A stretch of 64,000 nucleotides of DNA from Macrostomum lignano (Eukaryota), in assembly GCA_002269645.1 (NCBI GenBank), contig NIVC01001350.1, positions 1 through 64,000 of the forward strand, in the 5' to 3' direction. Each line of letters begins with the position of its first letter. Position 1 is the first letter of the stretch. This document shows positions 14,966 through 39,100 of the stretch, in pieces. The position numbers and the translations under genes were made by a program. Below the pieces are notes generated by a model. The model had not been told where the DNA came from. It worked only from the letters and a program-made list of their open reading frames with translations, and ran no database searches.

Positions 14966-17900
14966 CTTGCTGTCTTGGGATGTTTTGTTTTTAGAGGGAA
15001 TGTCTGTTGTTGTTTTTTGAAGGCTTTATTTCGCTGTCTATTTGTTATTTGTAAAGAACAAGGATTCTATCCAGATGTCCCCCATCGGGGGGCAAAGATT
15101 GCTAGTGCAGTTCTAAAAGCTTCCAATCGAAAACCGCGCCATGCTTCTTGAACGTTTCCAACCATTGCTCTCTGCCCCATTCCAATTGCAATTGCTGCCG
15201 CCTCTCAGCATTGGAGCCTGAAAGAATGAAACGACCGGACCTAAAGGCTAGGGCGGCGGGGGTTGGCGGCGGCGGAAATTGGAGGCGCTGGGGTGGCGGG
15301 TGTTTTGGGGTCGCGCGGCACATAATCTAAAAATAGAAATCTACCAACCACACGCTAAACCAAAATTCCACACTCTCTCCTCTCCTTTCCGCATCGCCAA
15401 CGTTATATGTTGGCTAGCGCCGTCTCACTGACTGTCTGTCCTTTTCAGCCCTGCGGGGGGTAGGGTTTGGCGGGGGTTAATTTGGAGAATTCACGCAGTG
15501 GGGTTGATGGCAATAGCCAGCCTGAGGTCAAGTCAAACCACACCACCCCATTTCATGTACATCACTGGGCCGGGGCGGCAAGCACAGTCACGCTAGACCC
15601 CACCCCGTATATTTGACCCATTAATTAAGCTATCCAGGCAGACCAGGCTTGAGTCGCTTGACCACAAGTTTGGAGTAGGACGTAAGCCCCAGAAAACTCG
15701 CACACAACCTGACCCTAAAAAACACGAGGCGACGTTTGCAAAGCCAATACGAAATTTAGTGCAATCGTTGGTTTAGAAGAACCCGACAAAGGAGTAATTA
15801 ATTCAGTCTTATTTAGTGGAGTGGATTGGCATAAGTAATTTACTACTTATACAGGGTCGATAGTTTGGGCCCTAGCAGATAACAGTCACAGTCCTTTATA
15901 TAAATTTGTGGACTTGCGCCGGTGTGGGAACAAAACGCAATAAATTAAATTAATTAACTGATCGAAAGAATAGATCGATAAAAAGGAATTTCGATTTGGT
16001 GTCTTTGAATTTTTGTATGCTTGTAGTTGAAGTTTTCAATTTCGAGCCATTGGCTATATAATATTAGGGACTACTAGTAGACACGGCACACGGGTACAGT
16101 ACAGGTTAGGGTTAGGCTTGTACTTTGCCAAGGCAAGGTGTCTGCTGCTGCTTGACAGGGACAGGGTCAACTGAGGTTGCGGAGAGCACAAAAAAGCAGC
16201 AGCCAACGCACAAGGGCCTTGTCTTTCGTCGGGGTATTCTGGGGTCAAGCTGTTACAAACTAAGTCCTACTAAAAAGGCTTGAAACTGTAAAAACAGGCC
16301 GGGTGCCTGGGTCAGCCCCACAGGTGTGCTGGGGCGGGGGGCGGGGCTGCCACCCTCATCAGGCAAGGCGAGACCGGGAGAAGCAGAATGAGACTGAAAT
16401 GTTGCTGCTGTCTGTCACTTTGAATTCTGGATTCTGTTTGCTTTTTTAACAAAGCTGCTTCCTGGCTGCTCCCAAGACGACCTACTCTAATTCTCCAAAT
16501 CTCAAAGGGCGGCTGTGTACCAGTCATTCGATTTTTGATTCAACCTTTATTATTATTATTGGCTTGTTAATATCTTCCACTCTGATTAGCTCTGTTGCTT
16601 CTTTGCTTTGTTTGGGATTAGCTTTGCTTTGCTCCGCCAATCCGACCGCAGTTATTATTATTGCAAATCGACAGGCTATTAGCAGGAAGCCCTAATCCTG
16701 TTTGAGTAACAATTTACATTAGCCAGTGCATAACACAGAACAGAACAAGGACAGAAATCATGATTAATTCCGTCTAACCTGATCCAGACCTTTCAATTAA
16801 GCCTTTCTGCCACTCTGTTAACCCCGGCCTGGCCCGGCCCCCACCTCAACCTGAGCCTCCCAGCGGACAATTTCCAATCCAATCCTTTTGAGGAGGTCTC
16901 TTAGCCCCAGTCCCGTTAGTTTAGCCGGGCCAGGCCAGGCCAAACCCCCAAACCAGACAGGGGGCTCAACTGGACTGATGGGGTGGTGGGTTATGCTTTG
17001 ACCGTTGGCGCCCCCTGTGTGTTGTGCTGGCGGGCATTGGGGGTGGTTGGCTTTGGTTTCGCGTGTCGCGCAAAGTGAAGAAGGGGTGGCGGGGCTGGAC
17101 CAACCCCCCCAGATCTCCGCACCGACCCCACCGGCCTCCTCCAATCTCACAGCGCTCACCACAAACAACCTAGCCCTCCCCCCCACTCCAATTCAGCCCA
17201 ACCCCGCGACCTCCCTGCGTGCCCTTTTAAAGAATGCAGGGAAAGGCAAGAAAGGGAGACCCGGGGCGGCGGTCTGGGGAAAACGCCATACAGCGCAGCG
17301 CAAGACAAGCACCGTTGCATTTTTCTCCCTCGTCTGAATCGCCACTTCCCCACCGCCGCGACCTCCCCCGTTTTCCAAACCCCGCCCTTTTACCCAATTT
17401 CTCTCCTCTTTACTCTTCCCCAGTCGTCTCCCGAGCCTTCGCCGGCCTCCCTTTTTCCTCCTGCCCGCCACTTAGATTCGGACAGGATCCATTTTTGGCC
17501 TCCGGGACCTCAACAATCGACCCTCCCCGATAACACCCCCTGAAAAATTCTCTTTCAATTCAAAACCGTCTGCAGTCCGGGGGCGGCACTACTCCGGCAA
17601 CTAAGCAACCGCCTCAGCTTTGCACCACAGAGAGGCTTGGCCGACCTAGTGGTGACCGCCGACCGGACTCGAATCTACAAGCTTGAAGCGGATCGTCAAA
17701 GCTGGTAAGGATCGCGAGCTTTTTATCATATTCCTGTTTATTATTCATTGCATCAAGGGTCAACATCCAGTCTAGGACTCTAGAGACGGGTCCAGGTCAA
17801 CTGCCCCCGGGCCCCCTTGACCCTCCAAACTAGATTCCTAAATTGGAAGGAATAAACACTAAGATTTGCTTTCCAATCCAGTGCTTAAACATAAAACGCT

Positions 17901-18493
17901 CAATGCAGAACAGGGAAATCCTACAAAACGTTGGTGGTGTTCGTGTTCGGTAAATTAGATCCAAATTCAAATTCGCGCCAAAAAAGTACATTGTTAAACA
18001 GCCTTAAAACATCATTTAAACACCAAAAACCGATAAGCAAAGATAAATGAAAGCTGAAATTCTGTTAAAAAATTTTTTAAGTTTGAACTTTGAAGGTGTC
18101 TTTAACGGTGTTTACGCCCAGCCCCCCTCAGAATTTGCCAGTGTCTTTGTTTTCGTGTTTGTTTGCCGCCACGTCCCTCTTGACCCGAGTGACCCAAATA
18201 AAGACTTTCCGGCTGTGTCCAGCCCAGTCAGGCCCCATCCTTCCTTGCGAACTGAAAAGTCTTAAAAATAAAACTGCGCTTGGAGTGGCAGCAGGACCCC
18301 CCAGCAGCCATTTGACCAGCCCTGGAGCCCGGAACAAAGCTATTTGATTTATATTTCTTCCGGAATCGGGCTGTCTGGCTGCATGGCTGTCTTAGGCCTT
18401 GTCTGTGCTGTTATGGGGCATCCGGCCCTACCAACTTCTTAAATAAAATCATTTCAACTGAGTGCAGCTGCACTGAAACCGCACCTTCTCCCT

Positions 18494-19280
18494 GTTCTAT
18501 CTCACCGTTCTATCTCACCGTTCTATCTCCCCGTTCTATCTCACTGTTCTATCTCACCGTTCTATCTCACCGTTCTATCTCACCGTTCTATCTCACTGTT
18601 CTATCTCACTGCTCTATCTCACTGTTCTATCTCACCGTTCTATCTCACTGTTCTATCTCACTGTTCTATCTCACTGCTCTATCTCACTGTTCTATCTCAC
18701 CGTTCTATCTCACTGTTCTATCTCACCGTCCTATCTCACCGTTCTATCTCACCGCTCTATCTCACTATTCATCTCACTGCTCTATCTCACCGTTCTATCT
18801 CACTGTTCTATTTCACCGATCTATCTCACCGTTCTATCTCACTGTTCTATCTCACTGCTCTACATGTATCTCACTGTTCTATCTCACTGTTCTATCTCAC
18901 TGCTCTATCTCACCGTTCTATCTCACTGTTCTATTTCACCAATCTATCTCACTGTTCTATCTCACTGTTCTATCTCACTGTTCTATCTCACCGTTCTATC
19001 TCACTGTTCTATTTCACCGATCTATCTCACTGTTCTATCTCACTGTTCTATCTCACTGTTCTATCTCACTGTTCTATCTATCTCACTGTTCTATCTCACC
19101 GTTCTATCTCACCGCTCTATCTCACTATTCATCTCACTGTTCTATCTCACCGTTCTATCTCACTGTTCTATTTCACCGATCTATCTCACTATTCTATCTC
19201 ACCGCTGTATCTCACTATTCATCTCACTGCTCTATCTCACCGCTCTATCTCACCGCTCTATCTCACTGTTCTATCTCACC
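18494..19280. repeat. Minisatellite, 13-bp unit TTCTATCTCACTG
   Basis: Tandem repetition ending ~40 nt before the acceptor at 19322. Confidence 0.95.
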
Positions 19281-19345
19281 TCCCCGGCAACGAAATGACC
19301 TACTGACACTCTGCCGCCGCAGGCCGTTGCCGCCGCCGACCACAA

Positions 19346-19580
19346 ATGAGCAACGGGCCGACAGGCTCCGGACTCGTCGACATCAAGACGGCGGCGTCGT
19401 CCTCCGGCTCCTCAGCCGCGGTGGCTGGCGCCGCTGGCAGCATTAGCAGCGCATCAGCTGCGGGCTTCCTGCTGCCCACTACAGCCGCTGCGGCTCTGGC
19501 TGCCCGCACTCAGGGCTGCCTGTCGCTGGCGCCCCAGCAGCAGCAGCATCTGTTAGTGCTTGGCGCGACTGCTTTGACTG

Positions 19581-19613
<33 letters not shown>

Positions 19614-22600
19614 TCAGTCATCAGCAGATGTCTGCCATGGCTGCGGCGGCGGCGGCGGCCGCTGCTTCGGCAAATCGGCAAGACATTTCTGCCAGCTTCC
19701 CGTCAGTGACCGCGGTGAGTTGCGCTGAGGCATGCTGCTTTGTCTGGGCTACGCCCAGTTATCCGCCCCCTTCACTCAGTTATCCGCCCCCTTCACTCAG
19801 TTATCCGCCCCCTTCACTCAGTTATCCGCCCCCTTCACTCAGTTATCCGCCCCCTTCACTCAGTTATCCGCCCCCTTCACTCAGTTATCCGCCCCCTTCA
19901 CTCAGTTATCCGCCCCCTTCACTCAGTTATCCGCCCCCTTCACTCAGTTATCCGCCCCCTTCACTCAGTTATCCGCCCCCTTCACTCAGTTATCCTCCCC
20001 TCACTCAGTTATCCACCCCCTTTACTCAGTTATCCGCCCCCTTCACTCAGTTATCCGCCCCCTTCACTCAGTTATCCGCCCCTTTCACTCAGTTATCCCC
20101 CCTCACTCAGTTATCCGCCCCCGTCACTCAGTTATCCGCCCCCTTCACTCAGATATCCGCCCCATTCACTCAGACTCCCCCTTCACTCAGATATCCGCCC
20201 CCTTCACTCAGATATCCGCCCCATTCACTCAGACTCCCCCTTCACTCAGATATCCGCCCCCTTCACTCAGATATCCGCCCCCTTCACTCAGATTCGGCGA
20301 TACCCGCCCCCTTGCTCAAATATCTGCCGCTTAAGTGTCTGTTTATGTCAGGGATATACCTGCCCATTTACTAAAGATGTTTACTTCTCAACGAATTCGA
20401 ACCCAGGCAGCTACTGATCAATCGTCAGTATTAGCAAGTCTGCGTCAATTCTCCTAAGTTCTCAAATTTTCCAAATCCCAAAAAGCTACATAAAAAACTG
20501 AACTCTGCACTGCAGTCTGTGTTCGACTTCTGTACTTGCCCTGCAAATTTCTGCTTTTGCAGCGGAGCAGTGGCCTAGGGTTTATCCACGCACTCGCTCA
20601 CCCGCATCGACATGCGCTGACTGAAATAGTGAAATATCTTTACTTTCAGTTATACATGCGTCTCTTCAACACCAGTAGTATGTCACTGTGTCAGACTCAA
20701 AACTGGAACCCCTTCCCGTCATAATAGCCAATCGTTGTTTTTGCAGAATAACTTTACATATAGGTATAGAAATACACTACAAGGGCAAGTCATTTTGCTA
20801 GGCTCGAATAATGCGCGCAGTAAATGGGATTAAGGCTTTAGATTGGACGGGAAACGGAGGGGCAGAGCCGGTGCGCTGTGTTCTCTATGCGAGCTTGAGT
20901 AATCGTACTTTTAGTGGCAGCTTCTAGAAGGTAGTGGCTTTGATCCCCTCCCAGTTATAGGAAGGGGCTTTGATTCTCTCCCAATAGTTAGCTTTGATCC
21001 CCTCTCCTATCGGGAGAGTTTGATCCCCTCTCCTGTCAGTGGGGAGTTTTATCCCCTCTCCTATCAGTGAGGAGTTTGATCCCCTCTCCTGTCAGGGGAA
21101 ATTTGATCCCCTCTCCTGTCAGTGGGGAGTTTTATCCCCTCTCCTATCAGTGAGGAGTTTGATCCCCTCTCCTGTCAGGGGAAATTTGATCCCCTCTCCT
21201 GTCAGTGGGGAGTTTTATCCCCTCTCCTATCAGGGGAAATTTGATTCCCTCTCCTGTCGGGGGGGGGTTGATCCCCTTTCCTGTTAGAGAGGGAGTTTAA
21301 AAGTGTGACCCCCTATTCTGTCAGGGGGCCTGAGCTTTGATCCCCTTCCCTGGTGTCAGTGGGAATGAACCACATGGGCTTAAAGGTGTGCGATCCGGTT
21401 TAATCACCATAGCAACATAGCCAGTTTGTGTCTGCGTTTTAAAGTCCATATTCAACATGGTCGCTGGGTTCTGTCGGGATGACTTGGAAGAGCGGCGGAC
21501 CCACTAACTCTACAGACTGCCAGCGGTGCTCACTGCACTGTAAACACTGGCTCAGGCCGCCACAACGTGAGCGGCCGCTTCAAGTGCAACCTGGAAGACT
21601 CAGTCTGACCTCATCACATCCCAGCCTCCCTCACTGCCGCCGATTCCAAATCGCTTCCTCTCCATAGGTCATTCGACCTTCTCGTCAACCCCCGCCTTCG
21701 CCTTCTCTCAGTCCTAAAGTCCTCAACCTCGCCATGCCCGTCCTCTCGCCCTTTTCCAGGAAACCCCTGCCCCCTGCTGCCTCCCCCTCTCTCGGGCTGA
21801 GCTCAAGCCCTGCCGGCTCTAACTCAGACCCACCACCCCACCCGACCTTAGATTTCAAACCTAAGGCCACTGATATACGCCTCAGAACAGAACTACTGCA
21901 GCGTAGGTAAGGGGTTCAACTCTGGGTCTGAGCTGGCCGAGTCCTCCCCTGTCTCAGCCAGTTCCCAACCCCTCCCTCCCTCACTCCTCGCGTCGCTCAG
22001 TAGGGAACTATGAGCATTATACATGAGTAGAGAGGCCTAACCAAGCTCTTCCCCTCATCTCCTCCCCTGCTACCCCCGCATGCCCCCTAAAAGTGCAAAC
22101 GCACCGAGGCCGCTCCCTCCCGTCTCCTGGCGTGCCCTTCCTGCTCCTTCCCCGGCCCTCCCAGTGCCGCTGTGTGTCACCCCCACCCGCCCTATCCCTC
22201 CCTCTTAATCCCTCCCGGGGCCTGTGGGCTTCATCACCCGCCCCCGTGCCCGCCCCCCCCCGGCCGGCAGTCAGGATTCCAGCTTGGGTCAGCTTACACA
22301 CACAGTGCAAATTTCTGCCTGTATCCCTTCCCCCAATCCAAATGGACTGACCGTCTTCATCGGGATGGATTGGGATCGGTCTATTTTTCCCCAACCCGAC
22401 CTATCAAGTATTAGTTCGGCGTATATGCATGGACGGGAGGGCACTGATCCCTAGCACCGCATTCCATTCCATCTCGCCAGGCGGGCTGACCCTATGGGCA
22501 GTCTTCTTAATCCGATAGAATTGATGAAGAACCTCAGCTTCTTTGTAGGCCTCCTAGTGACCTTTGAACTGCTGAGTTCGGGTCGAAATGCCTCTTGATT

Positions 22601-25600
22601 GTTGAGGTAATTTCAAACTGAAGTGTGATGTTATGAGGCTAAGCGGGTTTGGTCCTGAGCAAGGCGTTCCTAAGAGGGATTAGGAACAGTGTTTACCTGA
22701 GGAATTAGGGCTCAGAATAGTATTTACCTGAGGAATTGGGGCTCAGAACAGTATTTACCTGAGGAATTGGGGCTCAGAACAGTGCCTACCTGATGAATTG
22801 GGGCTCAGAACAGTGCCTACCTGAGGAATTGGGGCTCAGAACAGTATTTACCTGAGGAATTGGGGCTCAGAACAGTGTTTACCTGAGGAATTGGGGCTCA
22901 GAACAGTATTTACCTGAGGAATTGGGGCTCAGAACAGTGCCTACCTGATGAATTGGGGCTCAGAACAGTGCCTACCTAAGGAATTGGGGCTCAGAACAGT
23001 GCCTACCTGAGGAATTGGGGCTCAGAACAGTGCCTACCTGAGGAATTGGGGCTCAGAACAGTGCCTACCTGAGTAATTGGGGCTCAGAACAGTGTTTACC
23101 TGAGAAATTGGGGCTTAAAATGTTTTCCAAAAACAAAATTAGACTGAGGGTCACTACTTGAAATGACATTGTAAGGGCAATTTAGCTCATTGCTAATGGA
23201 AAATACTGCCCTGTTAAATTTGTTTCGCAACATATCGGCAACTCTAGGCAATTAAATTTTCGCTTGTTTTAAAATCGCGTGGAAAATGAATACGTCAGTG
23301 TAGTAACTTCATATATCTTTTTCCCCACCGGATTTTCCCAAACTCGCGTGTCCCAGACTCAGATTCAGCAATTTTGTATCGCAAAAAAGATTTATCAATT
23401 GTAATAAAGCTAAATTACAATTCAGATCGCGATTCGTACAGCGCTTTATGCATTATTTATCGCAGGCGTCATGGATATATTGATATTAGGCTTCTAAGGT
23501 TTCTAAAAAAAACTCGGGGAGCCTCAGCTTACTTCATATCATAGGGCCGATTCATTCAATGCCAATGGTAACTACGGGGTTATTAAAGGCATAGCATAGC
23601 TAAGGTCAGCTTCGAGCGAGAAGGCTTAAGTCCAAAAAAACGCGCAGCCCACCCGGAAGAGAGATAAGAATTCCACAGGCCTCCCGTTGCAACCCGTCTA
23701 TAAGTGGCCACCGTAGTTCGTAGACCCGTAAATCGTGACTTTTGCGAGTTTTATGGACAGTCCGTCTGTCTGTCTTGTTTGACCTTTCAGCGTAACTAAT
23801 GCCTGATTGTGGAATTGTGAATTGTATGATGTATGATTTGTAGACAATTAGTATTATTTAAGTATAGGTGAATAATCTGGAGATTTTTCTTGACAAACTG
23901 AAAACTAAAAAATCTATATGAATATGAAAATTCTAATGATTCTATTGATTTATAAGCAATTAAATTTAATAAAAAATTTAGCGGTGGAGAAGTCGGGGTT
24001 CGAACCCGAGACCTTTCACATGCGAAGCGAACGCTCTACCTCTGAGCTACATCCCCGACAAGCATTGTAGAGTATTTAAACCCTTAATAAACCAGACACA
24101 TAAACCCGTGTTGTCTACTGACAGTAGCGTTTTATTTTTATGCATGCAATTTTTCGAAATTTTCCCAAAAATAATTAAATATGCACAATGTTTTGCAGAC
24201 GGCAAACAGCCACCCAGTCAGCGGTGCCGCCTCATTCGCCGCCTTCAATCAAAGCACCAGTGCCAGCCTCGGTTTGAACGGCCTATTAGAGGCTGCAAAA
24301 ACCAAGCTGCGCGAGTCTGCCGCCGAAATTCGTCCGTCTACCGCTGCTGACAGACAATTCCAGCAGGGCGGCGGCGATGCGGCAGACTCAGCTACCGGCA
24401 AAAGCGAGGGAGGCGGCTTCTCGAACGGGCTGAATAAAAAGCCGCCTGGAATGATGCTCAACTTGGCGCTGACTGAGAAGGTGAGCCGGCTTATGCTTAA
24501 TTTTTTTCGGAAAACTGTTGACCTTATTACTAGTTAGTTAGTTAGTGTAGGTAGACAGGTAAAGTAGGAAAGTAGAGGTAGGTGGCGTAGGTAGTCAGAT
24601 AGATAGGCAGGTAGACAGGTGGGTCGGCAGGTAGTCAGGTAGACAGGTAGGTAGGCAGGTAGGTAGGCAGGTAGGTAGGCAGGCTGGTAGGTAACTGAGC
24701 AGATCGACCCACAGCCAGCGAGGAATTTGTCCATTCCGCTGACCCCCAAGGACTCACACGGGGTGTACAGAGGTCCTGACTCTCTCTTCGTCAAGCAGTT
24801 TTTGTACACTTTGGAGATTGGCCCTCGCGGCAGTACAGAATCAAAATCAGGACCGGGGGCAGCGGCGCAGAAGACGTTCTCAGCCCCTCATAAAATGATC
24901 TACGGGAAATCGGACATTCGCAGCTCACCTCGATAGAGCAGCCGACGGCATCAGTTGAGCCGCCACAGCAGCAGCAGCAGGCCGACCCTCATTCGAAGCC
25001 GTCTCCGGGCAGCAACGCCAGCAGTTCGGCCGCGTTCGAAGTCTGCCGAGTGTGCGGCGACCGCGCCTCCGGCCGGCACTACGGCGTGGTGAGCTGCGAA
25101 GGCTGCAAAGGCTTCTTCAAGCGGTCGATTCGGCGCAAAGTGAATTACGCCTGCCGCAGCGGCAAGCAGTGCCTGGTGAACAAGGCGTACAGGAACCGCT
25201 GCCAGTTCTGCCGCCTGCAGAAGTGCATCTCAACCGGGATGCGCTCCGAGGCGGTGCAAAACGAGCGCAAGCCGAACCAGCAGCAGCAGCAGCAGCAGCA
25301 GCAGGCACAGGCTGCTGCCAGGAGGGCCTCGCTGATGCCGCCGACCTCCGCCGCCGCCTCCCTCTCTGGTCTCGGCGGCGGTGGCGGAGTCGTTGAATTT
25401 GGCGTCTTTAATAGCAACGGTTGCCATAGCAACAACAACAACAACAATAACAGCAGCAGCAACGGCGAACAGTCGAACGGAGCGGCCGACAGCGACGACC
25501 TGGACGGCGGCTTCGATGCGGCCGTCAAGACCGAGCCGCTGCCATCGGATGCCGACGCCGTCTGCGCCGTTGACCATTCCGACGATGCCAACGCTGAATC

Positions 25601-28600
25601 CGAGGCGCCGCCGTCCATGAACCACGAGGAGGCCAACGGGATTGAAGACTGCGAGCCTGGACTTGACGAGCAACAGGTGAGTCAAGGACTTCTTATTGTC
25701 GGGCAAAGGACTTATTTTTGTCAAGCCAGTCATGACAGGTCATTGGGAATTTAAATTCAACATCAGCTTAAGAAGCACGGGAATCAGCCAGGCCAAGGTC
25801 ATGGGGAATCGCGGGAATCAGCCAGGCCAAGGTCATGGGGAATCACGGGAATCAGCCAGGCCAAGGTCATGGGGAATCACGGGAATCAGCCAGGCCAAGG
25901 TCATGGGGAATCATAGGAACCAGTCATTCAGGTCATGAGGAATCATTGGAACCAGACAGTCAGGTCATGAGGAATCATAGGAACCAGCCAGTCAGGTCAT
26001 GGGGAATCATTGGAACCAGCCAGTCAGGTCACGGGGAATCATAGGAACCAGACAGTCAGGTCATGGTGTTGATCAGCTTAAGACTCCCCGCCAATCCATG
26101 ACGCCGGCAGGATCTCGGCAGCTTCAGCCACCTGCTGGATGCCGAGTCCCTCGACTTCGATTTGCCGCCGTTCGCCGCGCCGCAGTCGGTCAGCATCCAG
26201 TACGTGCGCGACGTCGCCTCCTCAGTGCTGTTCCGCATGATCCGCTGGGTGCACGACAGGCGCCGGCTGCGAGAGGCCGCCCCGGTCAGCGAGCAGCTCG
26301 GCCACTGCTGGTGCGACGTGTTCGTGCTGTCGCTGTGCCAGTGCTCGCCCCGGATCCCCATGCACGAGCTGCACTCCGCGCTGTCCCGGCACCTGCACGG
26401 CCTCAATGGCGTTGGTGGGTTTTGTAGTGCGACTCTGCGTGTCCGGGATGTGGTGGCTCATTGTCTGATTTGCGACTCTGCGGGTCCGGGATGTGGCTCT
26501 TTGTCTGGTGCACGACTCTGCGGGTCCGGGATGTGGCTCTTTGTCTGGTGCGCGACTCTGCGTGTCTGGGATGTGGCTCTTTGTCTGGTGCGCGACTCTG
26601 CGGGTCCGGGATGTGATGGCTCATTGTCTGATTTGCGACTCTGCGTGTCCGGGATGTGGTGGCTCATTGTCTGATTTGCGACTCTGCGTGTCCGGGATGT
26701 GGTGGCTCATTATCTGATTTGCGACTCTGCGTGTCCGGGATGTGGCTCATTGTCTGATTTGCGACTCTGCGTGTCCGGGATGTGGCTCTTTGTCTGATGT
26801 GCGACTCTGCGTGTCCGGGATGTGGCTCATTGTCTGATGTGCGACTCTGCGTGTCCGGGATTTGGCTCATTGTCTGATGTGCGACTCTGCCCTCTGTTCG
26901 GGGTGCCTGAGTGTGTAGTGTCTGACGTCATGGTGTCTAACGTGTGACTCATAATGTCTGGCTGTGTGACTCATAGTGTCTGGCTGTGTGACTCAATGTC
27001 TGGCTGTGTGACTCATAGTGTCTGGCTGTGTGACTCATAGTGTCTAGCTGTGTGACTCATAGTGTCTGGCTGTGTGACTCATAGTGTCTGAGGCATCAAT
27101 TCAGCGTCAAGCCTTCGCTGACTCTCCAGACGGAGTTCAAGGCAGCGAGTTGGACAGGACCCTAGCCGAGATTGACAAGCTGAAGCACATCATCGGGATG
27201 TTCATCGACGCCAGGGTCACCGGTCTGGAGTACGCCTATCTCAAACTCATCGCTCTGTTTGAGCCGGGTGAGCTCAGCTTAACTTCGTTAGGAGTTTCTG
27301 ACTGCCTGGATTAGTCCGACACAATGGGAGTTGGGATGGGATGACTGGGGGATTCGGGTGGGATGACAGGGAATTCAGATTTGAGGACAGGGGAATTCAG
27401 ATGGGATGACGGGGAATTCAGATTTGAGGACAGGGCAATTCAGATGGGATGACGGGGAATTCAGATTTGAGGACAGGGGAATTCAGATGGGATGACTTGG
27501 AATTCAGATTTGAGGACAGGGGAATTCAGATGGGATGACGGGGAATTCAGATTTGAGGACAGGGGAATTCAGATGGGATGACAGAGGAATTCAGATTTGA
27601 GGACAGGGGAATTCAGATGGGATGACAGAGGAATTCAGGTGGGATGACAGGGGAATTCAGACGGGATGACAGGGGAATTCAGGGGGGATGACAGGAGAAC
27701 TCGGATTTGAAAACGGGGGAATTCGGATGGGAAAGCTACGGCTCTTGCTTGTCCAATTAGCGGTCTGATTTCCAGCGAGTCCTGACCGGAAGCCGCCCCC
27801 CCCCCGCCTTACTGCAGTGTTCTGCGCGCCCACGGAAGACGCCACGCACTCGCTGCTGACGGCCATGCAGGAGCGCGCGGTCAGCGAGCTGCTCAGCCAC
27901 CTGCACGTCTCGCTCGGCGGAGCTCTGCCCGGCCACCAACGGCTGGCCCAGCTGCTGCTCCGCATCAGCTCGATTAGGACTCTGGACAAGGCGCGGATTA
28001 AGGAGATCTTCTTCTCGGGTTGGTCTGCGGGTTTTTCTGCTTGCTTGCCTGAGTTTTGTTACTAGGATGAGTAACCTGGGGACGGGAAGATGAGCTGGAG
28101 TTGTGATTTAGACTCTGATTCCTCATTAGATCAGAACAGCCAGCCCAGGTCATTAAGATAAGATTCACCAGACCATAAAGATAAGATTCACCAAGCCATA
28201 AAGATAAGATTCTTCAGGTCATAAAGATAAGATTCTTCAGGCCATAAAGATAAGATTCTCCAAGGTCATAAAGATAAGATTCTTCAGGTCATAAATATCA
28301 GATTGTCCAGCTCATAAAGATCAGATTCACCAGGTCATAAAGATAATATTCACCAGGTCATAAAGATAAGATTCCCCAGGTCATAAAGATCAGATTGTCC
28401 CGGTCATTAAGATAAGATTCTTCAGGTCATAAAGATAAGATTCTCCAGGTCATAGGGACCAGGTAGCTCAGGTCATTATGATAAGATTATCCAGGTCATA
28501 AATATCAGATTCACCAGGTCATAAAGATAAGATTCCCCAGGTCATAAAGATAAGATTTTCCAGGTCATTATGATAAGATTCTCCAAGGTCATAAAGATAA

Positions 28601-29748
28601 GATTCTCCAGGTCATAAAGATCAGATTGTCCCGGTCATTAAGATAAGATTCTCCAGGTCATAAAGATAAGATTCTCCAGGTCATAGGGACCAGGTATCTC
28701 AGGTCATTATGATAAGATTATCCAGGTCATAAAGATCAGATTCACCAGGTCATAAAGATAAGATTCCCCAGGTCATAAAGATAAGATTTTCCAGGTCATT
28801 ATGATAAGATTCTCCAAGGTCATAAAGATAAGATTCTTCAGGTCATTAAGATAAAATTATCCAGGTCATAAAGATCAGATTCTCCAGGTCATAAAGATCA
28901 TATTCTCCAGGTCATAGGGACCAGGTAGCTCAGGTCATTAAGGTAAGATTATCCAAGGTCATAAAGATCAGATTCACCTGGTCATAAAGATCAGATTCAC
29001 CTGGTCATAAAGATCAGATTCTCCAGGTCATAAAGATCAGATTCACCTGGTCATAAAGATCAGATTCTCCAGGTCATAAAGATCAGATTCACCTGGTCAT
29101 AAAGATCAGATTCTCCAGGTCATAAAGATCAGATTCACCTGGTCATAAAGATCAGATTCACCTGGTCATAAAGATCAGATTCTCCAGGTCATAAAGATCA
29201 GATTCACCTGGTCATAAAGATCAGATTCTCCAGGTCATAAAGATCAGATTCTCCAGGTCATAAAGATCAGATTCACCTGGTCATAAAGATCAGATTCACC
29301 TGGTCATAAAGATCAGATTCACCTGGTCATAAAGATCAGATTCACCTGGTCATAAAGATCAGATTCACCTGGTCATAAAGATCAGGCCAGCCCATCCAAA
29401 TCTCAAAAGATTTTTCGCCCGCCACAACTTTCAGAGCAAATCGGCCCGATCCCCATGGAGACGCTGATGCCCTTCATCCTCAACAGCGGAAGCTTGCCGA
29501 CGAACCTTCAGGAGGAGCCGCAGACTGCGCAGCCACCACCGCCTCCTCCGCCGCCGCCGCCAATGCTTGGCCAGTCTCAGCAAGAGCTGCTGCAAAGTCA
29601 GCTGCTGTACCATCGGCACCAGATGCTGCAGTACCAGCATCAGCAGCAGCTTCATCAGTCTGAGTCCGAGCACCAGCTGCCGCAGTTGAAACGCGAGCTC
29701 AGAGTCAGTCCCTGCGACAGTCCCGATAAAGTGCAGCGCTTCAACTGA
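19346..29748 (+). CDS. NR2C: Orphan nuclear receptor, NR2C (TR2/TR4, Drosophila Hr78) type, ~786 aa
   Basis: Exons 19346-19714, 24199-24480, 24924-25676, 26111-26414, 27130-27267, 27818-28018 and 29435-29748 (2361 nt, phases consistent; alternative pair 26410/27105 also in frame). DNA-binding domain [31 protein letters not shown]...[24 protein letters not shown]; ligand-binding domain motifs [20 protein letters not shown] and [21 protein letters not shown] match the TR2/4 pattern. Confidence 0.9.
19757..20292. repeat. Intronic minisatellite, 21-bp unit CAGTTATCCGCCCCCTTCACT
   Basis: Starts ~40 nt after donor 19715; the SYPPPSL translations are artefacts. Confidence 0.95.
20935..21352. repeat. 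Intronic degenerate ~26-bp repeat TTTGATCCCCTCTCCTGTCAGTGGGGA
   Basis: Tandem repetition in NR2C intron 1. Confidence 0.85.
22685..23115. repeat. Intronic minisatellite, 31-bp unit CTGAGGAATTGGGGCTCAGAACAGTGCCTAC
   Basis: About 13 tandem copies. Confidence 0.95.
23985..24056 (-). tRNA. trnA-CGC: tRNA-Ala, anticodon CGC
   Basis: Reverse complement GGGGATGTAGCTCAGAGGTAGAGCGTTCGCTTCGCATGTGAAAGGTCTCGGGTTCGAACCCCGACTTCTCCA: 72 nt, full cloverleaf, A and B boxes, G3:U70 pair, discriminator A, followed by a TTTTTT Pol III terminator. Confidence 0.95.
24535..24692. repeat. (GTAG/GCAG)n degenerate microsatellite
   Basis: NR2C intron 2. Confidence 0.85.
25778..26065. repeat. Intronic minisatellite, ~34-bp unit GGGAATCAGCCAGGCCAAGGTCATGGGGAATCAC
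   Basis: NR2C intron 3; carries AGGTCA in most units. Confidence 0.9.
26428..26890. repeat. Intronic minisatellite, ~40-bp unit GCGACTCTGCGTGTCCGGGATGTGGCTCATTGTCTGATTT
   Basis: NR2C intron 4, 5' part. Confidence 0.9.
26940..27090. repeat. Intronic 22-bp repeat GTGTCTGGCTGTGTGACTCATA
   Basis: NR2C intron 4, 3' part. Confidence 0.9.
27335..27735. repeat. Intronic minisatellite of two alternating 22-bp units (GGGAATTCAGATGGGATGACAG / GGGAATTCAGATTTGAGGACAG)
   Basis: NR2C intron 5; ~44-bp higher-order period. Confidence 0.9.
28150..29385. repeat. Intronic minisatellite, 23-24-bp unit AGGTCATAAAGATCAGATTCTCC
   Basis: NR2C intron 6, roughly 50 units. Confidence 0.95.
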
Positions 29749-29961
29749 TTGCCCCGCTGACATTCCGCGCGCCACGCTGACTCTGAGCGAGCAGCGCCTG
29801 ATGACTCTGTGAACTCCGCGCCTCTGACGCAGCGCCTGATGACTTTGTGAACTCTGCGCCTCTGACGTAGCGCCATTTTTACATTTGCAGCTCTCGGACA
29901 GATCAGCGCCTTCTTCATCCGGGATCCGGGATTCTTCATCATGTTAAAACTAAAAAGGTAT

Positions 29962-30655
29962 CCCCTGACCTTCAGCTGGCGCCACCCCCTGACCTTCAGG
30001 TGGCGCCACCCCCTGATCTTCAGCTGGCGCCACCCCTTGACCTTCAGCTGGCGCCACCCCTCACCTTCATCTGGCGCCACCCCCTGACCTTCAGGTGGCG
30101 CCACTGCCCCCAACCTATAGCTGGCGCCACTCCCCTGACCTTCAGCTGGCGCCACCCTCCCTCACCTTCAGCTGGCGCCACCCACTGACCTTCAGGTGGC
30201 GCCACTGTCCCCAACCCATAGCTGGCGCCACTTTCCTGACCTTCAAGTGGCGCCACTGTCCCCAACCCATAGCTGGCGCCACTTTCCTGACCTTCAAGTG
30301 GCGCCACTGCCCCCAACCTATAGCTGGCGCCACCCCCTGACCTTCAACTGGCGCCACTCCCCTGACCTTCAGCTGGCGCCACCCCCTGAACTTCAGCTGG
30401 CGCCACTCCCCTGACCTTCAGCTGGCGCCACCCCCCCGACCTTCAGCTGGCGCCACCCCCTGACCTTCAGGTGGCGCCACTCCCCTGACCTTCAGCTGGC
30501 GCCACCCCCTGAACTTCAGCTGGTGCCACTCCCCTGACCTTCAGCTGGCGCCACCCCCCCGACCTTCAGCTGGCGCCACCCCCTGACCTTCAGCTGGCGC
30601 CACCCCCCCCCCGACCTTCAGCTGGCGCCGCTCCCCTGACCTTCAGGTGGCGTCA
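29962..30655. repeat. Minisatellite, 24-25-bp unit CCCCCTGACCTTCAGCTGGCGCCA, just downstream of the NR2C stop
   Basis: Tandem repetition with TGACCT, CAGCTG and TGGCGCCA in most units. Confidence 0.95.
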
Positions 30656-31299
30656 CTAAACAAAACAATGTCTAATTTGGTGTCAGTTGAGGTTTTCTAT
30701 TTCGCTTGCCTGTTTGTCATTCAATTGTACCTTTTGTCTCCTATCCGTAACACGTTAAACAATAATTAACAATTTTCCCAGCATATTTTACTGCGTCAAC
30801 GCTTACAATACTACTGCTTCTACTCATCCTAGTAGAGAGCAGGGCATATTCTTGCTGTGCGAAATTTTTGCAAAGATTTCCCCGACCCGTCATATTTTCA
30901 ATAGAATTTCTGTACACCTGTCGCAGCGTTCGATAGACTTTGTACCTGATATCAATAATTGCCACCAGCTAATCTCAGTTATACAGATAGTCTTATCAAA
31001 TTATAATTATCTCGCAGCGTGTCCATAAGCAGCCATTTTGCCCCAACCCCCATATTTAATTGAACCGTCACGTGATTCTTAAAGTCATCCGCTGCACGAA
31101 CTGAAATTCAACTGCCATCCACGCCCACGTGTATACACTGATATATCTGTCTATTTTCTTAAACACTGTTTTTTCGGGTCCATACCGCCTCGCATTTCCC
31201 TGCATAGTGAGCATTGATTAATTCAAGTTGCATCTTGTTATGTTAGAGCTGCTGACGGCTGTCAACACTGTCTCTGCGTCTGATCTCACCCTCTGTCTG

Positions 31300-32056
31300 T
31301 CTCTAATCTCTATAATCTCACTCTCTACTCAGCCTCTAATCTCTCTAATCTCACTCTATCTCAGTCTCTAAATTCTATAATCTCACACTCTATCTCAGTC
31401 TCTAATCTCTCTAATCTCACTCTATCTCAGTCTCTAATCTCTATAATCTCACACTCTATCTCAGTCTCTAATCTCTCTAATCTCACCTCTATCTCAGTCT
31501 CTAATCTCTATAATCTCACACTCTATCTCAGTCTCTAATCTCTCTAATCTCACTCTCTACTCAGCCTCTAATCTCTCTAATCTCACTCTATCTCAGTCTC
31601 TAATCTCTCTAATCTCACCTCTATCTCAATCTAGTCTCTAATCTCTATAATCTCACTCTCTATCTCAGTCTCTAATCTCTCTAATCTCACCTCTATCTCA
31701 GTCTCTAATCTCTCTAATCTCACTCTCTACTCAGCCTCTAATCTCTCTAATCTCACTCTATCTCAGTCTCTAATCTCTCTAATCTCACCTCTATCTCAAT
31801 CTAGTCTCTAATCTCTATAATCTCACTCTCTATCTCAGTCTCTAATCTCTCTAATCTCACCTCTATCTCAATCTAGTCTCTAATCTCTATAATCTCACTC
31901 TCTATCTCAGTCTCTAATCTCTCTAATCTCACCTCTATCTCAGTCTCTAATCTCTATAATCTGACTCTCTACTCAGCCTCTAATCTCTCTAATCTCACTC
32001 TATCTCAGTCTCTAATCTCTCTAATCTCACCTCTATCTCACTCTAGTCTCTAATCT
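31300..32056. repeat. CT-rich degenerate minisatellite (CTCTAATCTCACTCTATCTCAGTCTCTAATCT-like)
   Basis: Tandem repetition. Confidence 0.9.
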
Positions 32057-32504
32057 TACCTTTCGTTTAAGTCTCTACTCTTTAACCTCGCTCCATATCA
32101 TCTCATCCTCTCTCGCATCAACTTCCCAGCTCCCTCCCTCCCAGCGCCAATCACGCGGCCTCCTCGTATTCGAGGTGGCTTGAGTACTTTGCCGTTTGTT
32201 TTATTTGCGCCTAGACGCTGCAGCTCCTTCAGTGTTTTATTGCACCTTTGCCTCTGTGTTCCCAATTATTGCCTGCCTATCACAGCACTTAGCCATATTC
32301 GAATCGAACTGGGAGTTACGGTCAGTGCGTTTCAAAAGGCGAGCTACACACGGGTTAATGTAACCGTTGTATGTCTGTTTTAGTCTTTGTTCATCTATTT
32401 GTTCGTATTTGCAGTCTTCGCTGACAATTAAATCACCGGGAAGTCCTTCGGGTACGAGGCTTGAGCACATGGCGCCTCCTACAGTCATCTCCATACTTCT
32501 CAAA

Positions 32505-34250
32505 ACTAATCTCTCTTCTCAACCCTTATTTGTCTTCTCACTCTTTATCTCTCTTCTCAACCCTTATTTGTCTTCTCACCCCTTATCTCTCTTCTCAACC
32601 CTTATTTGTCTTCTCACCCCTTATCTCTCTTCTCAACCCTTATTTGTCTTCTCACTCTTTATCTCTCTTCTCAACCCTTATTTGTCTTCTCACTCTTTAT
32701 CTCTCTTCTCAACCCTTATTTGTCTTCTCACCCCTTATCTCTCTTCTCAACCCTTATTTGTCTTCTCACTCTTTATCTCTCTTCTCAACCCTTATTTGTC
32801 TTCTCACTCTTTATCTCTCTTCTCAACCCTTATTTGTCTTCTCACCCTTATCTCTCTTCTCAACCATTATTTGTCTTCTCACTCTTTATCTCTCTTCTCA
32901 ACCCTTATTTGTCTTCTCACTCTTTATCTCTCTTCTCAACCCTTATTTGTCTTCTCACCCCTTATCTCTCTTCTCAACCCTTATTTGTCTTCTCACTCTT
33001 TATCTCTCTTCTCAACCCTTATTTGTCTTCTCACTCTTTATCTCTCTTCTCAACCCTTATTTGTCTTCTCACCCCTTATCTCTCTTCTCAACCCTTATTT
33101 GTCTTCTCACTCTTTATCTCTCTTCTCAACCCTTATTTGTCTTCTCACTCTTTATCTCTCTTCTCAACCCTTATTTGTCTTCTCACTCTTTATCTCTCTT
33201 CTCAACCCTTATTTGTCTTCTCACTCTTTATCTCTCTTCTCAACCCTTATTTGTCTTCTCACTCTTTATCTCTCTTCTCAACCCTTATTTGTCTTCTCAC
33301 CCCTTATCTCTCTTCTCAACCCTTATTTGTCTTCTCACTCTTTATCTCTCTTCTCAACCCTTATTTGTCTTCTCACTCTTTATCTCTCTTCTCAACCCTT
33401 ATTTGTCTTCTCACTCTTTATCTCTCTTCTCAACCCTTATTTGTCTTCTCACCCTTTATCTCTCTTCTCAACCCTTATTTGTCTTCTCACTCTTTATCTC
33501 TCTTCTCAACCCTTATTTGTCTTCTCACCCCTTATCTCTCTTCTCAACCCTTATTTGTCTTCTCACTCTTTATCTCTATTCTCAACCCTTATTTGTCTTC
33601 TCACTCTTTATCTCTCTTCTCAACCCTTATTTGTCTTCTCACCCTTTATCTCTCTTCTCAACCCTTATTTGTCTTCTCACTCTTTATCTCTCTTCTCAAC
33701 CCTTATTTGTCTTCTCACCCTTTATCTCTCTTCTCAACCCTTATTTGTCTTCTCACCCCTTATCTCTCATCCCACCCTTATCTGTCTTCTCACCTCTTAT
33801 CTGTCTCCTCACCCCTTATCTCTGTTCTCACCCCTTATCTGTCTTCTCACCCCTTATCTCTCATCCCACCCTTATCTGTCTTCTCACCCCTTATCTCTCA
33901 TCCCACCCTTATCTGTCTTCTCACCTCTTATCTCTCTCCTCACCCCTTATCTCTCTTCTCACCCCTTATCTCTCTCCTCACCCCTTATCTCTCTTCTCAC
34001 CCCTTATCTCTCTCCTCACCCCTTATCTCTCTTCTCACCCCTTATCTCTGTTCTCACCCCTTATCTCTCTTCTCACCCCTTATCTCTCATCCCACCCTTA
34101 TCTGTCTTCTCACCCCTTATCTCTCTCCTCACCCCTTATCTCTCTTCTCACCCCTTATCTCTCTTCTCACCCCTTATCTCTCTCCTCACCCCTTATCTCT
34201 CTTTTCACCCCTTATCTGTCCTCTCACCCCTTATCTATCCTATTCTCACC
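32505..34250. repeat. Minisatellite, 38-bp unit TTCTCAACCCTTATTTGTCTTCTCACTCTTTATCTCTC (two 19-bp halves), decaying to a 19-bp unit at the 3' end
   Basis: Explains the three 560-640 aa Leu/Ser ORFs. Confidence 0.95.
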
Positions 34251-34654
34251 CTTTCTCTCCTTCCTTTCATTCCAGCATGAGTTGCCGCCGTCACTAAAAA
34301 CATTTGAGAATTTTTTCTTACGTCTGAATGACCCACTGTTTTGCTCTGCCTAAAGCGCCATAAACATAACGGTACGAGCGCAAGCCCCCCCCCCCCGCCC
34401 CATCACTCTGGTTCGCTGTGCTTTCTCCGTTTAATAAATTTAGCAAATTAATTTTTAGTATATAGGATGAAACCAAAAAGCTCCATGAATTACATTTGCC
34501 TTCTGCCGAAATGAGAAATTCTTAAACAGTGCAACATAAAACTTCTATTTTGCGAATCAAAGCTCATCAAGCTCATGCCAAGTTTTGCCGGAACTTTGTG
34601 AGTTGGTTATTTTCGTTAAAAATTTTATTTTATTGTTTTATGCCTTGAACTCTA

Positions 34655-36100
34655 TTTTAGACACTCCCAGATCCCCATTTTAGACACTCCCAGATCCCCA
34701 TTTTAGACACTCCCAGATCCTCATTTTAGACACTCCCAGATCCCCATTTTAGACACTCCCAGATCCCCATTTTAGACACTCCCAGATCCCCATTTTAGAC
34801 ACTCCCAGATCCTCATTTTAGACACTCCCAGATCCCCATTTTAGACACTCCCAGATCCCCATTTTAGACACTCCCAGATCCTCATTTTAGACACTCCCAG
34901 ATCCCCATTTTAGACACTCCCAGATCCCCATTTTAGACACTCCCAGATCCCCATTTTAGACACTCCCAGATCCCCATTTTAGACCCCCCAGATCCCCATT
35001 TTAGACACTCCCAGATCCCCATTTTAGACACTCCCAGATCCCCATTTTAGACTCCCAGATCCCCATTTTAGACACTCCCAGATCCCCATTTTAGACACTC
35101 CCAGATCCCCATTTTAGACACTCCCAGATCCCCATTTTAGAAACTCCCAGATCCCCATTTTAGACTCCCAGATCCCCATTTTAGACACTCCCAGATCCCC
35201 ATTTTAGACACTCCCAGATCCCCATTTTAGACACTCCCAGATCCCCATTTTAGACACTCCCAGATCCCCATTTTAGACACTCCCAGATCCCCATTTTAAA
35301 CACTCCCAGATCCCCATTATAGACACTCCCAGATCCCCATTATAGACACTCCCAGATCCCCATTTTAGACACTCCCAGATCCCCATTTTAGACTCCCAGA
35401 TCCCCATTTTAGACACTCCCAGATCCCCATTATAGACACTCCCAGATCCCCATTATAGACACTCCCAGATCCCCATTATAGACACTCCCAGATCCCCATT
35501 TTAGACACTCCCAGATCCCCATTTTAGACACTCCCAGATCCTCATTTTAGACACTCCCAGATCCCCATTTTAGACACTCCCAGATCCCCATTTTAGACAC
35601 TCCCAGATCCCCATTTTAGACACTCCCAGATCCCCATTTTAGACTCCCAGATCCCCATTTTAGACACTCCCAGATCCCCATTTTAGACTCCCAGATCCCC
35701 ATTTTAGACACTCCCAGATCCCCATTATAGACACTCCCAGATCCCCATTATAGACACTCCCAGATCCCCATTATAGACACTCCCAGATCCCCATTTTAGA
35801 CACTCCCAGATCCCCATTTTAGACACTCCCAGATCCCCATTTTAGACACTCCCAGATCCCCATTTTAGACACTCCCAGATCCCCATTTTAGACACTCCCA
35901 GATCCCCATTTTAGACTCCCAGATCCCCATTTTAGACACTCCCAGATCCCCATTTTAGACTCCCAGATCCCCATTTTAGACACTCCCAGATCCCCATTTT
36001 AAACACTCCCAGATCCCCATTATAGACACTCCCAGATCCCCATTATAGACACTCCCAGATCCCCATTTTAGACACTCCCAGATCCCCATTGCCAGCCACA
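34655..36100. repeat. Minisatellite, 23-bp unit TTTTAGACACTCCCAGATCCCCA
   Basis: About 60 near-identical copies ending next to the stop codon of the minus-strand gene. Confidence 0.95.
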
Positions 36101-36114
36101 GATCCCAGATCCGC

Positions 36115-39100
36115 TCAAGATGTGAACATGCATGCAGTGGCGGCCATAGCTGGAGCAAGTACCCAGCAACAGTAATTTATTGTCAGAAAATTCTTCCCAG
36201 AATATCCCATCAGCGATCCGCCATTAGCCGCAACTCGCTGTTGAGTCCAGATGCCGATAGCCTGATCGTAGCGCTTGTCAGAGTAGCCTCCATCGCAGCC
36301 GATCTCAAACCGCCTCAAGGTGTTTCGCAGCCTCACCAGCACTGAGAACAGGCTGCCGGCAGACAGTCCGCACTGCTCAGTCATGGCGTTCTCCAAGCAG
36401 TGACTGGCCCGCCTCCACGCCCCGGCAAGGTGTGCCTCGGTCCAGCTGGCATGGCTGGTGCAGCGGATCTGCCACAGGCTGAAATGGATTCTGCCGGCCC
36501 GGCGTTCTGCAGCTGCGCACTTTGACAGCGCGGCTGAGCGCATGCAGCCGAGGCTGCGTCTGAACGCTGAGGTGGTGGCGGGATTTGCGGCCTGAAGCTG
36601 GGCCTCCCTGTCCTGAATATTTGCCCCCCCCTGTCCTGAAGTTGTATTCTCCCTGTCCTGAATATTTGCTCCCCCTGCCCTGAAGTTGTATTCTCCCTGC
36701 CCTGAGGTTTGGCTCTCCCTGCCCTGAAGCTGTACATGTATTCTCCCTGTCCCTGAGGTTTGGCTCTCCCTGCCCTGAAGTTGTATTCTCCCTGTCCTGA
36801 ATATTTGCCCCCCCCGTCCTGAAGTTTTATTCTCCCTGTCCCTGAGGTTTGGCTCTCCCTGCACTGAAGTTGTATTCTCCCTGTCCTGAGGTTTGGCTCT
36901 CCCTGTCCTGAAGTTTTGCTCACGCTGTCCTGATGGGTTTTGATTTTCCTGTCCTGAGGTTTGTCTCTCCCTGTCCTGAGGTTCGGCCCTCCCTCTCCTG
37001 AGGTTTTTCCCTCCCTGTCCTGAGGTTTGGCTCCCTCTGTCCGGAGGTTCGGCTCTCCCTGTCCTGGGGTTCGGCTCTCCCTGTCCTGAGGTTTGTCTCT
37101 CCCTGTCCTGAGGTTCGGCCCTCCCTCTCCTGAGGTTTGTCCCTCCCTGTCCTGAGGTTTGGCTCTCCCTGTCCTGAGGTTCGGCTCTCCCTGTCCTGAG
37201 GTTCGGCTCTCCCTGTCCTGAGGTTTGTCTCTCCCTGTCCTGAGGTTCGGCCCTCCCTCTCCTGAGGTTTGTCCCTCCCTGTCCTGAGGTTCGGCTCTCC
37301 CTGTCCTGAGGTTCGGCTCTCCCTGTCCTGAGGTTCGGCTCTCCCTGTCCTGAGGTTCGGCTCTCCCTGTCCTGAGGTTTGCACATCTGTATTTGAACAT
37401 TGAACTGCTCTACAAGCATTAAGAATCACACCTGGCACGCGCGAGCAGACAAACTTGAGTTGATGAACTGTCACCTTCCAGTCAAAAGTGGCTCGAATCA
37501 GATCGAACCCGGCGGGGCAGGAATCTCGGACTCGGCGAGCTCCAGCTTCGTAGCTTTGCAGAGCTCTGCGAGGGTAGGTTGGAGGGATTTCCCACCTGCC
37601 AGATGGACTATTCCACTTAAATTTCCCATCCGTCAGCCTGGGAAAACCAGGGATTCTCTCCCGAGGATTTCCCACATTCCAGGTAGGGAATCCCAACAAT
37701 TCTCTCCAGTGGATTTCCCACATTCCAGACTGGGAAACCCAAGGATTCTCTCCAGTGGATTTCTCACATTCCAGGTAGGGAATCCCAAGGATTCTCTCCC
37801 GTCGATTTCCCACACTCCAGGCAGGGAAGCCCAGGGATTCTCTCCCGTGGATTTCCCACATCCCAGGTAGGGAATCCCAAGGATTCTCTCCCGTGGATTT
37901 CCCACATCCCAGTAGGGAATCCCAAGGATTCTCTCCCGTGGATTTCCCACATTCCAGACTGGGAATTCCAAGGATTCTCTCCCGTGGATTTCCCACATTC
38001 GAGGCAGGGAATCCCAGGGATTCCTTATCAGAGATTTCCCACTCGTCCAGTCGCTCACCCACAGATCCCGTCTTTGCCAGTCAGTTTGGTCTCGGCGGCG
38101 GCTGTGAGCACGGGATGCACCGCCTGAATTCCCGAGTCCCGGATAGCGCTCTCAAATTCCATGCGAATTTGCCTGAGCCGCCCCTGAAAGCCGGGCTGGC
38201 AGGCAACCGAGTAGTTGAAGGCTGAGCAGCGAGGGAAAAGAGGGGATTACGTACGCGATATGGGGTGTGCAATATTTGGGAGAAATTTGAGAACTAGCTC
38301 ATCATTTTTACCCAGGACACCTGGCCTTTTGTGCTTAGTCGAAAAGAAACTATTTTTAAAAATGATTTCGAGAAGGACAGACGTAAATTCTTGTGGAGTA
38401 GTTCTCCAGGGAGCCGCTGCTACCCCTTATCCTCTTCTGAGCCGCTGCAATACCCTCTGGTCCTCTTCTTGGCTGCTGCAATACCCTCTGGTCCTCTTCT
38501 TGGCCGCTGCAATACCCTCTGATCCTCTTCTTTGCCGCTGCAATACCCTCTGGTCCTCTTCTTGGCCACTGCAATACCATCTGGTCCTCTTCTTGGCCAC
38601 TGCAATACCCTCTGGTCCTTTTCTTGGCTGCTGCAATACCCTCTGGTCCTCTTCTTGGCCGCTGCAATACACTCTGGTCCTCTTCTTGGCCACTGCAATA
38701 CCCTCTCGTCCTCTTCTATGGCCACTGCAATACCCTCTGGTCCTCTTCTTGGCTGCTGCAATACCCTCTGGTCCTCTTCTTGGCCGCTGCAATACCCTCT
38801 GATCCTCTTCTTTGCCGCTGCAATACCCTCTGGTCCTCTTCTTGGCCACTGCAATACCCTCTGGTCCTCTTCTTGGCCACTGCAATACCCTCTGGTCCTT
38901 TTCTTGGCCGCTGCAATACCCTCTGGTCCTCTTCTTGGCCGCTGCAATTCACTCTGGTCCTCTTCTTGGCCACTGCAATACCCTCTGGTCCTCTTCTATG
39001 GCCACTGCAATACCCTCTGGTCCTCTTCTTGGCAGCTGCAATACCCTCTGGTCGTCTTCTTGGCAGCTGCAATACCCTCTGGTCCTCTTCTTGGCCGCTG

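Follow-up and report, generated by a model that had tools for sequence, protein, structure and literature searches.

The window analysed here, by which we mean the whole stretch of 64,000 nucleotides (positions 1 to 64,000 of contig NIVC01001350.1 of Macrostomum lignano, assembly GCA_002269645.1), holds a handful of recognisable genes (Table 1) in a setting that is unusually rich in minisatellite arrays for an animal sequence. About 39 distinct arrays, whose repeat units are 10-48 bp long and number at most 116 copies, take up ~38% of it (~24 kb), and several of them lie within introns of the ALDH1L gene. The present analysis concerns the 8-mer TACATGTA, of the form TA-CATG-TA, which occurs eight times in the window, twice within single minisatellite units whose neighbours carry one TA at the same place. 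As set out below, we regard these sites, with a probability of roughly 0.78, as end-joined excision scars of at least one TA-targeting cut-and-paste transposon of the IS630/Tc1/mariner type.

Table 1. Features of the window; positions are counted from its first letter.
Feature	Position	Strand	Description
10-formyltetrahydrofolate dehydrogenase (ALDH1L) exons	~2880-6450
TACATGTA	10026-10033		unique non-coding DNA
TACATGTA	10918-10925		unique non-coding DNA
TACATGTA	11946-11953		unique non-coding DNA
Candidate unexcised donor	13654-13943		290-bp insert resembling a MITE (a transposable element of the miniature inverted-repeat kind), TA-CATGCGCAAC...GTTGCGCATG-TA
TACATGTA	13739-13746		inside candidate resident element 13654-13943
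13-bp minisatellite TCTCACTGTTCTA	18487-19279		~60 copies; empty-site control
TACATGTA, probable scar	18861-18868		one unit of the 13-bp array; 19 vs 13 bp, net +6
tRNA-Ala	23983-24056
Nuclear-receptor DNA-binding exon	25050-25300
Weak candidate element	28060-30834		2775 bp, TA-flanked, perfect 12-bp terminal inverted repeat (TIR) CTAGGATGAGTA/TACTCATCCTAG starting CTAG
22-bp minisatellite	36604-37381		~35 copies; empty-site control
TACATGTA, probable scar	36733-36740		one unit of the 22-bp array; 28 vs 22 bp, net +6
Intronless rhodopsin-type G-protein-coupled receptor (GPCR)	49722-51392
34-bp TA-flanked palindrome	52401-52434		TA-CTCGTACATCCAAT..ATTGGATGTACGAT-TA, starts CTCG; hairpin z = -7.2
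TACATGTA	54510-54517		unique non-coding DNA
Protocadherin-like open reading frames (ORFs)	57244-61595	-	57244-57819, 58358-58951, 59469-60335, 60687-61595
TACATGTA	61778-61785		non-coding, ~180 bp past protocadherin-like ORF
Formin FH2 ORF	62362-63996		best identity 27%

Counts of excision scars are uncommon, since the site in its ancestral form has mostly disappeared; in the present case the minisatellite units provide it. The 13-bp array resolves into 54 anchor-to-anchor units, mostly 13 bp long, or 26 bp wherever a mutation has altered an anchor. A single unit of 19 bp, ATCTCACTGCTCTACATGT(A), reads ATCTCACTGCTC-TA-CATG-TA-TCTCA, and five sister units, ATCTCACTGCTCT(A), match it in everything except the six added bases and carry a single TA. 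The same change is present in the 22-bp array, where one unit of 28 bp (CTCCCTGCCCTGAAGCTGTACATGTATT, that is, CTGAAGCTG-TA-CATG-TA-TTCTCC) stands among sister units of the form ...CTGAAGTTGTATT, that is, CTGAAGTTG-TA-TTCTCC, with one TA. In both arrays exactly one unit has been altered, TA having become TA-CATG-TA by the gain of a second TA and of CATG, a tetranucleotide that the ancestral units of neither array contain. At these two control sites the duplication of TA and the added CATG can be read directly from a comparison of neighbouring units, two TAs facing the ancestral one, and the four bases enclosed by the TA copies fall inside the range of 2-4 bp that is typical of Tc1/mariner scars (PMC7913693).

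Array insertions were called by k-mer novelty together with anchor spacing; global alignment to a repeated consensus overlooked the +6 events. Across the ~24 kb of arrays, two of the three clean singleton +6 insertions are of the type TA to TA-CATG-TA. The third converts TC to TC-TCGA-TC at 13489-13494 in a 23-bp array (ATGTC-GAACAT to ATGTC-TCGATC-GAACAT); this insert can be read as a dinucleotide, a 4-nt palindrome and a dinucleotide, a shape like that of TA-CATG-TA, but at a site other than TA. A singleton +11 insertion, ATACAGTTTGA, was also seen at ~8480-8490, in one unit of a 17-bp array with the unit GGTGTCGGGATGTTTAC.

The excess of TACATGTA in the window is real and far beyond chance. 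Against the eight copies observed, dinucleotide shuffles lead one to expect 0.50 (maximum 3 in 100 shuffles), Markov models of orders 1-4 give 0.16-0.50, and local block nulls that preserve the composition of 1-4 kb give 0.25-0.54; a Markov model of order 5 expects 1.43 and is over-fitted for this word, whose own 6-mers it has already absorbed. The corresponding Poisson probabilities range from ~1e-7 to 1e-11, or 1e-4 with the order-5 model. When all 8-mers were ranked by their counts in distinct contexts, only poly-C and the CAG-type triplet repeat GCAGCAGC came out above it, and TACATGTA is the most over-represented non-simple 8-mer of the window. TACATG continues with TA in 8 of its 15 occurrences, no word of the form XY-CATG-XY other than the TA version exceeds 4 copies in the window, and one-mismatch variants of TACATGTA are barely enriched (12 vs 7.8). 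The flanks of all eight copies are mutually unrelated, so the sites do not stem from a dispersed repeat; their independence, like the excess of the word, is a direct observation. The first-pass annotation of this DNA had already listed the eight positions, which are borne out to the exact coordinate, and had claimed the change from TA to TA-CATG-TA in both arrays, which the comparison of the 19-bp and 28-bp units with their single-TA sisters upholds. Its suggestion that TACATGTA be counted genome-wide against Markov expectation and against related 8-mers yields, when applied to the window, a clear excess there; its estimate that one or two copies would arise by chance was too high, the figure being 0.2-0.5.

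The window contains 2950 TA dinucleotides, 1191 of which (40%) lie within arrays, and the presence of two of the eight TACATGTA sites in arrays fits random targeting of TA. No recognised coding ORF holds any of the eight. Their density, ~1 per 8 kb of the 64-kb window, corresponds to 0.27% of TA sites. Four sites fall inside 3.7 kb (10026-13746), a clustering that is marginal when compared with random TA sites (p = 0.05). Around this region, two exact (TTAGGG)-type 11-mers at 9992-10002 (minus strand) and 16106-16116 (plus strand) are inverted relative to each other at a distance of 6.1 kb and enclose four of the eight TACATGTA sites as well as the sole TACTAGTA; no longer inverted repeat surrounds this pair of 11-mers. 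As only one unit per array is scarred and one-mismatch variants are barely enriched, the scars probably arose recently in comparison with the pace of point mutation and of turnover in the arrays.

Tc1/mariner elements duplicate TA on insertion, and end joining after their excision leaves overhang sequence between the TA copies (PMC3878927, PMC2874221). By this mechanism, an element would have inserted at TA and duplicated its target, giving TA-element-TA. On excision, the transposase would cleave precisely at the 3' ends of the element and, on the opposite strand, slightly further inward by a few bases, so that each flank would keep its TA together with terminal bases of the element as a short 3' overhang, and host end joining would then unite the flanks as TA + CATG + TA with a net gain of 6 bp. 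The identity of the element and the origin of the four CATG bases are inferred. Two routes may be envisaged for the latter: either 2-nt CA overhangs on both flanks would be filled in and joined bluntly, or a self-complementary 4-nt CATG overhang would anneal and be ligated directly. The second route, if correct, would account for the uniformity of the scar. The first-pass annotation had proposed that a TA-targeting transposon ending in CA...TG was excised, and this proposal is supported by the duplicated TA and foreign CATG at eight independent sites, two of them with the ancestral allele; the transposon may also, as the annotation held, have been highly active. As to the type of scar, a TA-targeting excision footprint is the best-supported reading and can be refined to the +6 size reported for Minos, in place of the classic Tc1 scar, whose +4 words are not enriched. 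A literature search found no report of TACATGTA as a transposon scar.

A scan for TA-flanked TIRs revealed a 290-bp insert whose ends fit the scar (TAs at 13654-55 and 13942-43); by our own estimate, ~0.003 TA-flanked pairs with a perfect 10-nt TIR starting CATG are expected by chance. The insert splits the 23-bp array (12495-13638, 13953-14176) precisely where two units meet, the left side staying in register to 13650 and the right side resuming in register at 13953, and no interruption is seen in a paralogous variant unit at 12609-12654. At subterminal positions the insert carries GGTCGGCC/GGCCGAC motifs in inverted orientation; it also has ATGCGAC motifs that recur, and its end-to-end fold is far better than that of shuffled sequences (z = -4.4). 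The absence of any TA-targeting element with CA/TG ends, which had been named beforehand as an argument against transposon excision, is thus not what the window presents, an insert of the form TA-CATG...CATG-TA being there, with a target duplication that is ambiguous (see below). Two scans of metagenome contigs for this insert returned 0 matches and 26 seed-only chance matches to GC-rich contigs, respectively.

Further TA-flanked segments are weaker candidates. For the 2775-bp segment, ~0.05 comparable TA-flanked pairs are expected by chance (own estimate), and no Pfam match was found inside it. It encloses two large minisatellites (23 bp x 54 and 24 bp x 28), a hint that non-autonomous DNA transposons may carry some of the arrays along with them. 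The 34-bp palindrome is possibly the remnant of an internally deleted element. A search of the window for resident elements with CA...TG ends (16-nt arms, at most 4 mismatches) gave chance-level pairs only, and a generic inverted-repeat scan of the window gave nothing useful. The scan for TA-flanked TIRs of 9-12 nt returned four distinct pairs against ~3 expected at 9 nt; among the pairs considered, the one at 59552-60699 (CACGCAAAAT) spans cadherin-coding ORFs and was dismissed as a chance occurrence.

Several observations weigh against excision of a TA-targeting transposon. The ancestral single-TA allele is visible at only two of the eight sites, and Tc1, the best-studied element with CA...TG ends, usually leaves +4 scars, TACATA/TATGTA (PMC12632400). 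No transposase domain was detected by Pfam in window ORFs of at least 85 aa outside arrays (~6,600 aa concatenated), and the 290-bp insert has no second copy in the window. Its target duplication can be read either as TA with a 10-bp TIR or as GACTCA (6 bp) with a 15-bp TIR: the inverted repeat runs through the TA (ACATA-CATG...), with a direct repeat of GACTCA on its outer sides. The 6-bp reading restores perfect array periodicity and fits equally well, and would make the insert unrelated to the scars. In addition, the model with a 4-nt overhang predicts non-palindromic scars from other families, namely TACGAGTA/TACTCGTA and TACAAGTA/TACTTGTA. Both pairs seemed enriched under a Markov-2 null, under which the wider class TA-C-NN-G-TA counts 17 vs 2.8, but dinucleotide shuffles leave only a weak enrichment, 4 vs 0.65 for TACGAGTA/TACTCGTA (1 of 100 shuffles reaches 4) and 4 vs 1.18 for TACAAGTA/TACTTGTA (3 of 100 reach 4), so the members of the class other than CATG are suggestive only.

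Other origins of the eight sites have to be set against these points. Mutation at TA in which no transposon takes part, through repair of nuclease breaks or through templated or hairpin insertion, might add CATGTA, and the odd singleton insertions described above (+6 at 13489-13494, +11 at ~8480) indicate that insertion-type repair events do happen in the window. However, eight unrelated sites show one and the same set of six bases; CATG is absent from the flanks of both array sites, so local templating cannot supply it, and hairpin (P-nucleotide) addition would duplicate flank bases rather than add CA/TG. We consider a mutational origin of this kind very improbable. If TACATGTA were instead a functional palindromic cis-element under selection, for example a transcription-factor site, its perfect palindromy would be readily understood, and the same 8-mer is indeed a promoter motif of oomycetes (PMC11134190, PMC3520976), organisms that nevertheless belong to a different kingdom. 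Selection on a cis-element accords poorly with 6-bp insertions in single units of two unrelated minisatellites and with the lack of shared flanks or of a consistent position relative to genes, and we hold it to be extremely doubtful. For chance, or for an artefact of assembly or sequencing, no specific supporting evidence was found; the excess has a p of ~1e-7 or lower, the sites occur in unique DNA and arrays alike, and TA-CATG-TA with a duplicated TA is not the product of any adaptor or ligation junction known to us. The likelihood of such an explanation is next to negligible.

The shortage of donors raises the question of whether TA-bounded elements are removed by the host or by a programme, either through a domesticated excisase or through germline-to-soma elimination. 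With removal as the rule and not a rare event, more scars than surviving donors would be expected; locally, eight scars face at most one possible donor, all scars are identical, and a transposase gene was not found in the window. Yet a window of 64 kb is too small for a donor-to-scar ratio, and an ordinary burst of a MITE family followed by loss accounts for the same data. To our knowledge, host-driven or programmed removal of TA-bounded elements is without precedent in animals. Moreover, the TA-bounded eliminated sequences of ciliates are excised precisely, a single TA remaining (PMC3408717). Host-driven removal thus appears very unlikely. A related proposal, in which a TA/CATG-ended family is removed systematically by a very efficient, excision-biased transposase or a domesticated excisase, possibly between germline and soma, and in which re-ligation of a self-complementary 4-nt overhang makes the scar uniform, is very unlikely too; if true, the scars would amount to a record, kept throughout an animal's genome, of earlier insertions. 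We therefore favour, among the explanations weighed, end-joined excision scars of a TA-targeting cut-and-paste transposon.

As to the genes of the window, the ALDH1L exons share 73-77% identity with vertebrate proteins in a word-indexed search whose matches are all partial (350-690 aa), full-length ALDH1L comprising ~900 aa. For the GPCR a first search gave no match, and an exhaustive search gave a best identity of 37-38%, its few named relatives being lophotrochozoan (Lingula, Pinctada, Ostrea, a trematode). Exact look-ups of three ORFs of the window returned no match. The protocadherin-like coding sequence is divided among four ORFs in differing frames, with a 22-bp array (57999-58315) between two of them. 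GC content at third codon positions is 0.8-0.9 in several genes. An Rfam scan of the window returned tRNAs only. A SINE-like sequence (short interspersed nuclear element) lies at ~40930-41080; its tRNA-related part (41005-41074, minus strand) scores 28.4 bits with the Rfam tRNA model, just below threshold, and the adjoining stretch (...TTTTACAG...GTTAAGTGTCTTGCTCAAGGACACA...) resembles by eye the core of CORE/MIR SINEs. Finally, TTAATTAA, composed of two abutting TTAA, is found eight times in 7 independent contexts (15621, 15950, 47209, 53473, 53538, 54889, 56039 and 56202) against ~0.8-1.4 expected, two copies in a (TTAG)n array representing one duplicated event. This excess could be a second double-target-site signal, left by a TTAA-targeting element, or an effect of AT-rich patches.

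Excision scarring in itself is known biology; what is unusual here is the density of the scars, their uniformity and the empty-site control that is built into the minisatellites. Should the density of the window hold genome-wide, it would imply that a TA-targeting DNA transposon has come and gone very often in this animal, and the scars would make a significant contribution to its 6-bp indels. They might serve to gauge how much transposition took place in the past, to put dates on bursts and to trace the donor family, and the donor might be a new active element of the Tc1/mariner type with an unusually uniform scar.

The sites can be placed among known footprints and elements as follows. With Stowaway-like and other Tc1/mariner-related MITEs, the 290-bp insert shares its shortness, the lack of coding sequence, a TIR with subterminal inverted motifs, a TA on both sides and a strong end-to-end fold; it differs from them in being seen in one copy only, in a TIR of only 10-15 bp and in its ambiguous TA duplication. 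The ciliate TA-bounded internal eliminated sequences are alike in their TA boundaries, Tc1/mariner-like origin and mass excision, whereas they belong to organisms with two kinds of nucleus and leave one TA, in contrast to the two TAs and CATG found here in an animal host. A footprint of the hAT, P or Mutator type, with a duplication of at least ~8 bp, was rejected, as TA alone is duplicated at the two array sites and the total gain there is 6 bp. The BZ element leaves CA/TG (PMC12455594). Sleeping Beauty, Frog Prince and ZB likewise duplicate TA and leave a canonical scar through end joining of 3' overhangs (PMC3878927, PMC7913693); that of Sleeping Beauty and Frog Prince is TAC(A/T)GTA (PMC3878927), a +5 scar whose words are at chance in the window (TACAGTA 1 vs 1.3, TACTGTA 3 vs 1.35). 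Tc1 and Tc3 of Caenorhabditis elegans share the TA target, CA...TG termini and scars made of TA copies with terminal CA/TG, but the usual +4 words of Tc1 are not enriched in the window (TACATA 7 vs 5.3-7.1, TATGTA 0 vs 3.0-5.9). The footprint of Minos, a member of the Tc1 family from Drosophila hydei, comprises four terminal element bases and one extra TA, a +6 layout shared by TA-CATG-TA, the terminal bases of Minos being CGAG/CTCG. The scar bases of the window differ from these in being CATG, the window yielded neither a transposase nor a TIR of the Minos kind, and TACGAGTA/TACTCGTA are only weakly enriched there. The likeness to Minos lies in the duplication of the TA target and in the size of the scar, since Minos is reported to leave a characteristic 6-bp footprint upon excision (PMC3386967) and both altered minisatellite units have gained a net 6 bp (19 vs 13 and 28 vs 22 bp).

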